This document shows, one piece after another, positions 48,762 through 52,397 of a DNA stretch of 64,000 nt. Both the position numbers and the translations under genes were made by a program. Positions within the stretch are counted from its first letter, which is position 1; each line of letters begins with the position of its first letter. Source of the stretch: Rebecca billardiae RCC1528 (taxonomy: Eukaryota; Protista; Haptophyta); contig OZ251232.1 of assembly GCA_965240325.2 (NCBI GenBank), forward strand, positions 806,001 through 870,000, given 5' to 3'. Under the pieces are notes generated by a model. It saw only the letters and a program-made list of their open reading frames with translations. It had not been told where the DNA came from and searched no databases.

Positions 48762-49710
48762 CGGACTGGCGCTGCGCCAGTGGCGGCCGCCGACCCGGAC
48801 TGCGGCGCACCAGCGCTTGGCGCGCGCGCGGCGCGGCGCGCTGCGGCCGTCGAGTTGCCATGCGAAGGCGGCGCGTTGCTTGCGTGGCATAGGAACACGG
48901 CCATGCTCCGCACTGCGCCCCGCAGCTCGCTCCTCGTCGACTTAACCGCGCCTACGATCAGCGCGCATGCGAGCGTCGCCTCGGAATGAGCAGCCCGCGC
49001 CGGCCGCTCAGCCGTGAGCGCCCGCCTGGCAGCGCGAGGGCGGTCAGCTCGGGCCCGCTCGGGGCACGAGCTGCGGCTGAGCGAGGAAGCATGGCCATGT
49101 GCCTGCGCGCAAGCCGCGCCGCCTTGAGACATCGATCGTGCGCGTTGATGCAGCTTCAGACGGCTGTCGACGAATGCCGATCAGCCTGCACGAGCCTTGC
49201 ATGTCAGTGGAGATGGAACAACACAACACTGTCAACAGACCGTGAGCGCCCTGAACTCTGAAGCGGCTGAATATGAGTCTTCGGGTTGAACTGAAGCGTG
49301 TCGGCGCGCAGCGACTCGTGTACATCTGTGTGCATCGTCTGCGCGCGTGGCTGCCGTCATGCCATGCCTGAGTCGTTGCTCTGATGAGGAGTCCTGTCAA
49401 GGGCACCGCGACATTCGCAAGGGCAAGAAGAATAGTTGCGTGCAAGGTGCATGCCGTCGGCGGTGCGCACCGCCACCAGCGCGGCGGCGACTCAGGCGAG
49501 CGTCGCCGTCGCTCACCGTCGGACCGTCGACGGTTCTGTGCCCCTCCGTGCTGCAGTCTGGTAGATCGCAGCGGCGCAGCACAAAAGATATATATATATA
49601 TATGTCAACGCGAGCCCTCATCAGGTTCCCCATGGAGGTGGCCTTTGCGTTTCAAGGCCGACTGCGTAGGTGGGAAAGCTGCGCAGGCAGCGTGTCGCTC
49701 GCTGCGACGC

Positions 49711-51010
49711 TCAGAGCGCCTTGTTGACGAAGTGAGGCGAGAGCGTCGCCCAGATCTGGTCGGAGAGCTCCTCCCGCGAGAGGCGGCGCCCGCTGACGAC
49801 GCACGGCACGTGCGTCCAGTGCGCAAACTTGGAGGCACACAGCAGGAAGGTGTCGCGCACGGCCAGCTTGTAGCTGCGGACCAGGGGTGGGGGGACGCCA
49901 CGGCGCGTCGGCGCGCATCGCGAGCAGCGCGCGCGCGTCAAACGGGGGGCGTACGCCCACGCGCCAGCGCGCGTCCCCTCTCGGCCGACCCCTCACCTCC
50001 GGGGCACGCGCGCGGCAGCGGCGGCGGCGCGCACACCTCTGCCCAGCTGTCTCGTGCATGTCGAGCTTCGCGCGGCTGCCGTCCGCCCGCATCGAGGCCT
50101 CGGCGTCGGCAGGCGGCAGGTCAAGGTACAGCACCGCGTGCGAGCGCGGCAGGCCGAGCCACTCGCACTCGAACTTGGCCAACTGCTCGACGAGCGCCTC
50201 CCGCGCGCCGCTCGGCTCGTCCAGCTTGCTCGCCTGGTGCCCAAAGTTGGCCTCGGTGTAACGGTCGAGGACGACGTTGGTGCCGCGGGCAAGCCAGTGG
50301 CGCAGGACGGGCGCGACGTCGTGCCGGTTCTCGGCGTACAGCGAGGCGAAGAGCAGCGGGTTCACCTCGCCGATCGAGCCGTGCTTCCCCGCCAGCAGCT
50401 CCCGGATCAGCTGCCCGTGGCGGGCGGCGTCGTGCGGGAAGTCGAGCGTGCGCGCCGGGTAGCCGTGCGCGCGCAGGCGGTCGAGCAGCATGGCGGCCTG
50501 CGTCTGCTTGCCCGCGCCGTCGCCGCCCTCGATGACGAAGATGCGCCCAGGTGCGGCGGGCGGCGCGAGCGCCGACGCCAGCACCGTCTCCAGGTCCGAC
50601 GTGTCCGAGTAGGGCGCGAGCTGCAGCAGCGGCTCGCCCTCGGCAGCCCATGCGCGCGCACTCGCGAACGGGCACTCAGCCGACGCGCCAGCGGAGGAGT
50701 GCCAGACGCACACGGTGGGGATCCGGCGACGGTGCAGGGCGTACGCCAGCTCCGCACCCAGCTCGGCGCCCGATGCGTCCCCGCCGCCCACGCCGCCGAC
50801 ATCGGCGACGAGCACGTCAGCCTCGGCGAGGCAGCCGAGCCGCTCGCTCGGCCCTGCGAGCGTGCTCGCGGCGGTGACGTGGCCGTAGCGCGAGAGGCAA
50901 CGCATCATAACGGCGGAGAGCTCGGCGCCGAGCGTCGCGCACGCCGCGAAGTAGATGCGCTGACCCATCGCCGTCTCGTGCGCGGCCGCCGCGGAGATCG
51001 GGAGCCCCAT
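49711..51010 (-). CDS. tmk: Thymidylate kinase with N-terminal DNPH1/nucleoside-deoxyribosyltransferase-like domain; exons 51010(or 50968)-50037 and 49873-49711
   Basis: FVIEGGDGAGKQTQ P-loop, LDFP, LDRYTEANFGHQ, YLDLPP, DMHE. N-terminal RIYFA...LSRYGHV...LAEADVLVADV...GAELAYA...PTVCVW. GT-AG intron 49874-50036. Confidence 0.88.
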
Positions 51011-51148
51011 TCTTAGCCAGACGACCAACGACTTGCCAGCGCGCGGGCCGCGGCCCGCGCGACCGAGGACGACCAACGACTTTCCACTTTCCCTAGCGGC
51101 TTTGAGAATGATGCCGCAAGCGAGCGCACGTTTCAAGTTGCACCGGAC

Positions 51149-51426
51149 CAAGGGGCTTACAAAATACCACTGGGGGCGAAACACAGTCGTCGCCACCCCG
51201 GCTCCTCAGACGGAATGTGTCCGGTGAGTGGAAAACACTGTGCGAGAAGTTTGAATCCGGGAAAGCGGGTAATCTGTCGACACATCTCGTATTCTTTCAA
51301 GGCATTCCGGTCTTTTTTTCATAAGAGCTACCGGACACTTTCCGTTTGAGGAGCCGGGGTCGCGACGGGGCTCCGCACTGGCGCTTTCGCCCCCAGTGGT
51401 ATTTTCACTATTTTGTAAGCCCCTTG
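51149..51426. mobile_element. P-like MITE, 278 bp, 7-bp TSD ACCGGAC
   Basis: TIR CAAGGGGCTTACAAAATA / TATTTTGTAAGCCCCTTG with imperfect inward extension. ACCGGAC at 51142-48 and 51427-33. Confidence 0.9.
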
Positions 51427-51623: not shown

Positions 51624-52397
51624 ATGGGGGACGATCGGCAGGCGCCGCCGGGGCTCAGCCTCAACCTGGCGCCCACGCGCAGGCCGCTCGTGGCCTCCTC
51701 CCATGACCCCGAGGGGTCCAACACCGCGGGCATCGTCACGGTACGCGATTCGCTCGGCACGCCTCGCTCGGTGCGCGTCGTGCAGAAGGAGGAGCCGGAG
51801 GGGGCTAACATGGTGCGCATCTCGTGGTTCTACACGTTCGAGGACAAGACGTACACCATCGAGCTGCGGCACGGCCGCCTCTCCGGCATCCGCAAGATCT
51901 ACGTCAATAAGGAGCTCGTCGAGCGCGACAAGAAGCTCAAGTACGCGATCAGCTCGGTCGCCACGCAGTACGAGTTCGATGTCGGCCCGAAGCAGGCGCG
52001 GATCGAGATCGAGCCCGGGCAGAAGGGCGGGTACACGTACCAGCTCTACATCGACGGGCGCATCGTTGAGGCCGCGCCCGCGCCGCACAACCAGGTGCCC
52101 TCGAAGGAGGTGCGCATCGAAAAGACGCAGCGCATCGGCATGACGCTGCAGAACAACTCGGACGGGCCCGGCGTGGTGGTGGTGCACTTCCAGCCCGAGT
52201 CCGCAGCGCGCGACGCCGGGGTGAAGGTGGGAGACATCCTCCTCGCCGTCAACGGCGAGCCCATCAACACGCACGAGATCGCCGTCTACCGCATCGACCA
52301 GGTCGCGCCCGGCGATGCGTTCCTGCTCAGTGTCGCAAGGCACGGCGTCGGCTCGGGCGGCAGGGAAGAGGAGGACGCGCACCAGCTGTACACGTAA
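51624..52397 (+). CDS. FAIM-domain + PDZ-domain protein
   Basis: W...YTIELRHGRLSGIRKIYVN...YTYQLYIDG is FAIM-like; IGMTL...PESAARDAGVKVGDILLAVNG is PDZ. Confidence 0.85.
   Translation: MGDDRQAPPGLSLNLAPTRRPLVASSHDPEGSNTAGIVTVRDSLGTPRSVRVVQKEEPEGANMVRISWFYTFEDKTYTIELRHGRLSGIRKIYVNKELVERDKKLKYAISSVATQYEFDVGPKQARIEIEPGQKGGYTYQLYIDGRIVEAAPAPHNQVPSKEVRIEKTQRIGMTLQNNSDGPGVVVVHFQPESAARDAGVKVGDILLAVNGEPINTHEIAVYRIDQVAPGDAFLLSVARHGVGSGGREEEDAHQLYT

Follow-up and report, generated by a model that had tools for sequence, protein, structure and literature searches.

Introduction

DNPH1 is a cancer drug target that destroys 5-hydroxymethyl-dUMP (hmdUMP or 5hmdUMP) before thymidylate kinase sends this nucleotide towards DNA. 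Competition between the two enzymes for hmdUMP, which was the premise of an earlier note on the DNA studied here, is on record in the literature (PMC13184875). The closest described precedent for a protein joining enzymes of this kind is the DmtZ-DutZ fusion of bacteriophages with Z genomes, in which an N-terminal DNPH1-like or nucleoside 2'-deoxyribosyltransferase (NDT)-like domain of ~145 residues is linked to a nucleotide-pool enzyme and the two parts catalyse successive steps in a single deoxynucleotide pathway (PMC12884076). The window analysed here, a stretch of 64,000 nucleotides from the haptophyte Rebecca billardiae RCC1528 (contig OZ251232.1, positions 806,001 to 870,000 of the forward strand), carries at 49711-51010 on its minus strand a two-exon gene with a product of ~379 residues, in which a short linker connects an N-terminal domain of the DNPH1 fold to a thymidylate kinase whose motifs are intact, the two domains packing together.

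The fusion in the window differs from DmtZ-DutZ in the partner enzyme, which in the latter is a dUTPase-like dATP/dGTP diphosphatase, in the state of the N-terminal domain, since DmtZ has kept its catalytic triad and is active on dAMP, and in the host, the phage fusion being that of a bacteriophage (PMC12884076). Both folds are already known, as are fusions of NDT-like domains to nucleotide-pool enzymes and, in a few prokaryotic proteins, the combination visible to Pfam; full-text searching of the literature turned up no account of thymidylate kinase fused to a DNPH1 or NDT domain. From sequence comparison and structure prediction we conclude, with moderate confidence, that the window protein is a thymidine monophosphate (dTMP) kinase whose DNPH1-derived module most likely no longer acts as a hydrolase and would have a structural or regulatory role.

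The N-terminal domain has the DNPH1 fold

The N-terminal domain (N-domain), of five β-strands and five helices, was modelled with AlphaFold2 from an alignment of the family, with a predicted local distance difference test score (pLDDT) of 88.5 and a predicted template-modelling score (pTM) of 0.82. A Foldseek search of the PDB with this model returned DNPH1/Rcl structures in all of its first 46 matches (best E 1e-6), and structural alignment to human DNPH1 with VIA-align gave a Z score of 16.1 and a root-mean-square deviation of 2.2 Å over 119 residues, while other enzymes scored lower (Z ~14 for the CMP glycosidases MilB and BcmB, and 11-12 for nucleoside 2'-deoxyribosyltransferases). Profile searches point the same way. 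The twelve distinct PDB sequences matched by a profile of 67 homologous N-domains are all DNPH1/Rcl and are matched over their full length (E 2e-6, against 1.1 for the next), and a profile of 29 haptophyte N-domains, which leaves out the members most similar to DNPH1, those with intact motifs, finds DNPH1/Rcl at E 3e-8, with the next match again at E 1.1. Matches to Pfam PF05014 below threshold occur in 14 of these 29 haptophyte sequences. Taken alone, the window N-domain has only chance-level matches in Pfam, NCBIfam, PHROGs and PDB sequences; standard searches miss it, as the precomputed Pfam list shows the kinase domain only.

The N-domain is confirmed by the predicted structure and the profile matches as a genuine DNPH1-type fold, homologous to DNPH1/Rcl, and the DNPH1/NDT-like domain fused to thymidylate kinase that the earlier note had recognized by its motifs is thereby borne out, with DNPH1/Rcl as the only profile match among solved structures. 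The similarity comprises the α/β fold, 23-27% identity, homology at the profile level over the whole domain and the equivalence of Tyr20 and Glu87 to Tyr24 and Glu104 of DNPH1. A targeting peptide or a disordered extension was also considered for this region and is ruled out by the confident predicted fold.

Catalytic and phosphate-site residues

The key residues of human DNPH1 are Tyr24, Asp80 and Glu104: Tyr24 hydrogen-bonds to the nucleophile, Asp80 has been proposed both to serve as general acid and to activate the water used in hydrolysis, and the 5'-phosphate is contacted by the backbone amides of Ile29, Arg30, Gly31 and Gly100, by Ser98 and by Ser128 from the partner subunit of the homodimer (PMC10483697). 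The window protein retains the tyrosine within IYFAAC and, as the earlier note had seen, the GxE nucleophile position, with Glu87 of GAELAYA aligned with Glu104. The same note's description of the GSIRGG, TEH and acidic motifs as degenerate also holds: the GSIRGG loop reads ACATLG, the TEH histidine is absent and the position of Asp80 is occupied by Arg57, an assignment based on the ungapped HMMER pairing of the family arginine with D69(N) of rat Rcl, the counterpart of human D80. Ser98 is replaced by glycine (Gly81 in the alignment), and Ser117 sits in the helix equivalent to that of the partner-subunit Ser128, a placement made by eye where the alignment is gappy. The domain also differs from DNPH1/Rcl in a six-residue glycine-rich insertion before the nucleophile helix and in its covalent fusion to a kinase.

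Within the haptophyte clade the tyrosine is kept in 27 of the 29 sequences and arginine stands at the Asp80 position in 25, while the nucleophile position holds Glu in 24, Asp in four and Gln in one. Aspartate is found there in three of the four sister sequences from Pavlovales, Diacronema among them, and the glutamine belongs to a prymnesiophyte; the tyrosine position, too, varies between Tyr and Phe among close relatives. Euglenozoan members have Ser, Asp, Ala, Thr or Ile in place of the nucleophile, and often Phe in place of the tyrosine. Among Pavlovales the N-domain shows 48-50% identity and the kinase 79-82%, and the faster divergence of the former indicates weaker constraint; on the other hand, A69, Y90, L92, C101 and P127-L129 are invariant in the 29 haptophyte sequences, which indicates that constraint on the domain is still real.

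These observations bear on the proposal of the earlier note that the N-domain actively sanitizes the nucleotide pool. The domain would then be a deoxynucleoside monophosphate (dNMP) N-glycosidase that uses Tyr20 and Glu87 to remove hmdUMP, dUMP or another noncanonical dNMP before the kinase step, with Arg57 stabilizing the leaving group or the phosphate. The retained Tyr-Glu pair and the conservation of Arg57 in the haptophyte clade are compatible with such an activity, as are the competition between DNPH1 and the kinase DTYMK for hmdUMP in mammals (PMC13184875), the presence of intact fusions in thymidylate operons described below and the phage fusion of an NDT-like glycosidase to a pool enzyme, both domains of which are active (PMC12884076). 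Against it stands the absence of the proposed general acid, Asp80 (PMC10483697). Human DNPH1 variants D80A and D80N are among the PDB matches, and the D80N crystal structure holds intact 5hmdUMP. The glycine at the Ser98 position, which in most prymnesiophytes is an aspartate that would repel the 5'-phosphate, the loss of GSIRGG, the variable nucleophile and the rapid evolution of the domain relative to the kinase also argue against hydrolysis, and we consider an active glycosidase in the window protein unlikely. The earlier note had itself allowed that the domain may be a noncatalytic regulator, and it is this reading that the lost residues and the variable nucleophile favour.

The thymidylate kinase domain

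The kinase domain encoded by exon 1 matches Pfam PF02223 with 55-58 bits (E 1e-15; cut-off 27) and the human-derived and Mycobacterium tuberculosis thymidylate kinase (TMPK) structures at E 1e-12 to 1e-14, while the NCBIfam dTMP kinase models match it below their equivalog cut-offs (84.8 against 193 and 52.7 against 83). It shares with PF02223 enzymes such as human DTYMK and the M. tuberculosis TMPK the P-loop, the DRY motif and a putative LID-region arginine; type II enzymes are marked by Gly in place of Arg in the P-loop. Residues G162, D164, G165, G167, K168 and T170 of the P-loop are invariant in 61 family members, as are D249 and R250 of the DRY motif, with Y251 nearly so; R313, D310, D317 and E320 are likewise invariant or nearly invariant, and the alignment with TMPK structures places them in a putative LID region. 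The domain belongs to a separate clade, in which nearly all full-length proteins carry an N-terminal DNPH1-like domain. Assignment to an actinobacterial type of kinase was considered and is weakened: PRK07933 is the best NCBIfam model, but the domain is about equally distant from the human and the mycobacterial TMPK. A very long branch lies in the tree between the kinase clade and the Microbacterium enzymes.

The model of the exon-1 product, comprising both domains, has a pLDDT of 89.3 and a pTM of 0.87, and so high a pTM for a two-domain chain indicates a confidently fixed interdomain arrangement. This predicted rigidity would suit a nucleotide-sensing allosteric module, in which the old active site would bind, but not cleave, a dNMP or dNTP (such as dTTP, dUMP or hmdUMP) and thereby modulate the kinase. 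The fold and the residues lining the pocket have been kept while those of the chemistry have changed, and the N-domain has been retained across two eukaryotic phyla and a virus, as would be expected of such a module. Nearly every pocket residue is replaced in Euglenozoa, however, which indicates that sensing would not be a family-wide function; moreover, this explanation overlaps with the preferred one, and computation cannot separate it from a purely structural role. As an explanation in its own right we regard allosteric sensing as doubtful.

Distribution and phylogeny of the family

A word-indexed search with exon 1 retrieved 126 proteins, and nearly all of the full-length ones have 340-400 residues and the same architecture. 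About 100 database proteins, including open reading frames (ORFs) derived from transcriptomes, have the fusion architecture, and the names seen for family entries are only 'dTMP kinase', 'thymidylate kinase-like' or 'hypothetical'. The survey of its distribution for which the earlier note had asked places the fusion in haptophytes, Euglenozoa, coccolithoviruses and a few proteins of prokaryotic type. Haptophyte members come from Diacronema and Phaeocystis; Euglenozoa are represented by the euglenid Eutreptiella, the diplonemids Diplonema and Hemistasia, and kinetoplastids that include Leishmania, Leptomonas, Phytomonas, Strigomonas, Perkinsela and others. The presence of full-length fusions in MMETSP and EukProt transcriptome assemblies indicates that the fusion is expressed in relatives. 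The viral members are thymidylate kinases of Emiliania huxleyi virus, such as YP_294189 of EhV-86 (P0099/P0147; 327 residues), with a shortened and degenerate N-domain, and the membership of coccolithoviruses implies that genes have passed between haptophytes and the giant viruses that infect them. A profile search of 1.84 billion representative sequences gave 190 clusters (at 50% identity) with E <=0.001, a number that mixes fusions with standalone DNPH1-like proteins of ~140 residues.

The nearest named relative by identity is KFE25_009915 of Diacronema lutheri (65%). Maximum-likelihood analysis of the kinase domain puts the window sequence, that of D. lutheri and three more in a starred clade, which nests within a starred clade of 22 sequences including Phaeocystis. 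This placement and a G+C content of ~70% mark the source of the window as a very GC-rich haptophyte of the Pavlovales. The kinases of the family form a distinct and strongly supported clade that is joined by a very long branch to the outgroup of actinobacterial dTMP kinases, the canonical eukaryotic enzyme not being part of the tree; the backbone of the tree is unresolved.

In orthologues of the Trypanosoma type (P0189, which is XP_067192413.1 of Trypanosoma melophagium, P0171 and P0175) the DNPH1 residues are gone, the P-loop reads IEGEDAAVV in place of GGDGAGK, the DRY motif has been lost and there is no Pfam match to the kinase. Judged by these sequences, both halves of the protein appear to be pseudo-enzymes.

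Catalytically intact relatives and their gene context

The complete DNPH1 triad is found within the eukaryote-type family only in P0069 and P0071, which match Rcl directly at E 4e-8 and whose kinase domains are 54-56% identical to that of the window protein. A single sequencing run yielded the short, bacterial-looking contigs (37% G+C) on which both lie. One of the two directly follows a weakly ThyX-like gene, with an overlap of 8 nt, and the other begins 70 nt after a ThyA gene, whose product shares 70-76% identity with the ThyA enzymes of Proteobacteria and Flavobacteriales. A further set, P0216, P0192, P0200 and P0177 (MBI4450708.1, an NDT-TMPK fusion of Candidatus Woesearchaeota), is recognized by Pfam itself as combining PF05014 with PF02223, the former being above its cut-off only in P0216 and P0192. 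At the positions aligned with the catalytic and phosphate-binding residues of DNPH1, all four have retained Tyr, Asp, Ser-x-Gly and Glu.

These prokaryote-type fusions have the domain order of the window protein and share with the eukaryotic family the motifs YAL-x-RRIP and HPLL-x-x-x-EY. Counted together with P0069 and P0071, several of them score on PF05014, and three exceed its cut-off. They differ in the retained catalytic positions and in their location in compact clusters of thyA, thyX or dCMP deaminase genes; in the group of ~400 residues to which the archaeal P0177 belongs, the kinase is too divergent for the hidden Markov model of the family's kinase. In the woesearchaeotal cluster (JACQSV010000028.1, L023:3017-7218), a dCMP deaminase gene lies ~500 nt upstream of a ThyX gene, the end of which is overlapped by 4 nt by the gene for the NDT-like-TMPK fusion; the ThyX is unusually long (671 residues). 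From these contexts it follows that the catalytically complete fusion resides in prokaryote-style thymidylate operons, and a glycosidase coupled to dTMP metabolism, and with it the proofreading proposed in the earlier note, fits the intact relatives in thyA/thyX operons much better than the window gene.

Another activity of DNPH1-like domains is the transfer of deoxyribose 5-phosphate between bases, as carried out by phage DmtZ in its fusion to a pool enzyme (PMC12884076), and the N-domain might similarly make dTMP from another dNMP and thymine and feed it to the kinase. The residues missing for hydrolysis are equally missing for transfer, and the intact relatives adjoin thymidylate synthases, which already make dTMP; a transferase is thus very improbable.

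Searches for further relatives returned other arrangements. In the IMG/VR viral contigs, queried with P0069 and the family alignment, and in a phage collection, queried by tblastn, the relatives found were kinase-only. A metagenome scan for relatives with an intact triad yielded ordinary intron-containing prymnesiophyte genes, and the corresponding scan of bacterial and archaeal genomes yielded only standalone DNPH1 homologues, in Patescibacteria and Saccharimonadia. One such homologue, of 137 residues, in a patescibacterial metagenome-assembled genome (JBAZTR010000001.1, L024:5004-5417), has all of the canonical motifs (IYFAGSITGG, TEHV, NRDLNWL and PSFGVGYE) and adjoins a glutamyl-tRNA-synthetase-like gene.

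Gene model and neighbourhood

The coordinates of the gene and its features are collected in Table 1. The boundaries given by the earlier note are exact: the first in-frame ATG has its A at 51010, and the TGA stop codon ends at 49711. That note gave no intron. A search for RNA runs of this organism listed none, and the exon structure reported here rests on reading of the sequence and on homology. The splice context is CAGAG/GTGTGC and, after 163 nt, CCGCAG/CTACAAG, where coding resumes in a different frame. The junction makes a Ser codon, giving the spliced product ...DMHETAG-Q-S-YKLAVRDTFLL..., and the intron is called because the frame changes and because, once it is removed, the residues are spaced as in the family consensus HETAGxxYKxxVRxTFLWC. 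Exon 2 also fits the C-terminal consensus of the family, YKxxVRxTFLWC...W..VPC...FVN. Database searches and folding were performed with exon 1 (324 residues), whereas exon 2 was translated and compared with the family consensus. Exon 1 is a 100% match to the window's own database protein and is 65-68% identical to orthologues from Pavlovales; that of D. lutheri is intronless, with a single exon of 1128 nt.

Table 1. Positions in the window of the fusion gene, its exons, domains and motif residues.
Feature	Positions	Strand	Details	Evidence
Exon 1	50037..51010	-	ATG at 51010-51008; residues 1-324 and first two bases of codon 325	ORF/translation
DNPH1-fold N-domain	50567..50965	-	residues ~16-148; five β-strands and five helices	AlphaFold2, Foldseek, VIA-align, profiles
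Tyr20	50951..50953	-	codon TAC, in IYFAAC; equivalent of DNPH1 Tyr24	alignment columns
Arg57	50840..50842	-	codon CGG; at the DNPH1 Asp80 position	HMMER pairing
Glu87	50750..50752	-	codon GAG, in GAELAYA; equivalent of nucleophile Glu104	HMMER and MAFFT alignments
Kinase domain, exon-1 part	50037..50548	-	residues ~155-324	PF02223, NCBIfam, PDB TMPKs
P-loop	50501..50527	-	GGDGAGKQT, residues 162-170	translation
DRY motif	50258..50266	-	D249-R250-Y251	sequence
Intron	49874..50036	-	GT-AG, 163 nt, phase 2; GTGTGC...CCGCAG	sequence
Exon 2	49711..49873	-	C-terminal 54 kinase residues (YKLAVRDTFLLC...FVNKAL); TGA stop at 49713-49711	translation

A second ATG, that of Met15, lies 42 nt downstream of the first, and a downstream start of this kind is what an artefactual fusion could invoke, with the N-terminal part as a separate gene, a targeting peptide or an untranslated segment. 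Met15 nevertheless precedes the whole N-domain, which is joined to the kinase in one uninterrupted frame, and there is no in-frame methionine between Met36 and the P-loop, so that an internal start cannot yield a functional kinase without most of the N-domain. The same architecture recurs in the ~100 database proteins, with transcriptome ORFs and the intronless Diacronema gene among them, and the domain is predicted to fold confidently, which does not suit a disordered presequence. An annotation artefact is extremely improbable.

The window has a G+C content of ~70% and a CpG observed/expected ratio of 1.27, that is, no depletion; the connection to a 5mC-containing genome that the earlier note drew is a conjecture. 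The fusion gene shares a divergent promoter region with a gene at 51624-52397 (plus strand; ATG at 51624), an ORF of 257 residues with FAIM1 (Fas apoptotic inhibitory molecule) and PDZ domains, both above their Pfam cut-offs. A nested interrupted palindrome occupies 51149-51426 of the intervening DNA, with arms at ~51149-51225 and 51330-51426 that are 92-100% complementary and flank a centre of 104 nt. Two copies of a 19-nt direct repeat (GACGACCAACGACTT[G/T]CCA), 48 nt apart, lie at 51020-51086, a short way before the ATG and presumably within the 5' untranslated region, and an (AT)n microsatellite of ~16 nt at 49585-49605, ~110 nt downstream of the stop codon in surroundings of 70% G+C, may be part of the 3' untranslated region.

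Discussion

The reading that we prefer is a dTMP kinase with a DNPH1-derived module that is probably no longer a hydrolase: Asp80, Ser98 and the phosphate loop have gone, and the nucleophile varies in sister species. The kinase, which keeps the P-loop, the DRY motif and the invariant Arg and Asp residues of the putative LID region, is inferred to be active, phosphorylating dTMP and possibly close analogues. The ancestor of the N-domain would have been an active dNMP N-glycosidase that formed one protein with the kinase as early as the prokaryote-like thymidylate operons, and the fusion would have been transferred from prokaryotes to eukaryotes. In the haptophyte lineage Arg57 would then have replaced the general acid/base Asp80, and the serine that binds phosphate would have disappeared along with the GSIRGG loop; what has been retained is the fold, the pair of Tyr and Glu and a surface of strong conservation (YAL-x-RR-x-P and PLL). 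In its present form the N-domain is probably an obligatory structural or dimerization module of the kinase, or possibly a nucleotide-binding regulatory module; its structural integration with the kinase would explain why it has been kept, and nucleotide binding may persist.

Several points weigh against this view. The retention of Tyr20 and Glu87, together with an arginine at position 57 in 25 of the 29 haptophytes, could mean that the active site has been re-tooled rather than that it is dead. LOG enzymes, which belong to the same superfamily, use an Arg/Glu pair. As the contacts of DNPH1 with the phosphate are mostly made by backbone amides, loss of the GSIRGG sequence is no proof that phosphate binding has been lost, and the ancestry described above depends on the unresolved backbone of the tree and on two short contigs of a single run. 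It is a tentative possibility that the Tyr-Glu pair and the clade-specific Arg57 form a new nucleotide-binding or catalytic site that gates the kinase, for example by sensing or destroying hmdUMP or dUMP, in a fusion that haptophytes, Euglenozoa and coccolithoviruses acquired from a bacterial thymidylate operon. If so, the family would stand as natural 'Rosetta-stone' evidence for DNPH1-type enzymes having evolved as guards over the step catalysed by thymidylate kinase.

Conclusions

The natural covalent fusion of the DNPH1 and thymidylate kinase folds constitutes independent evolutionary evidence of the functional coupling of the two. Trypanosoma brucei has two thymidylate kinases, and knowledge of the NMP (nucleoside monophosphate) kinases of trypanosomatids is limited (PMC10208901); in Leishmania and its relatives the fusion is one of two thymidylate kinase paralogues, and its pseudo-glycosidase module offers a starting point for studies of function and inhibition. 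With N-domains that range from intact through partly degenerate to fully degenerate, the last in Trypanosoma, where the kinase motifs have also been lost, the family illustrates cleanly how an enzyme domain in nature becomes a pseudo-enzyme inside a fusion.

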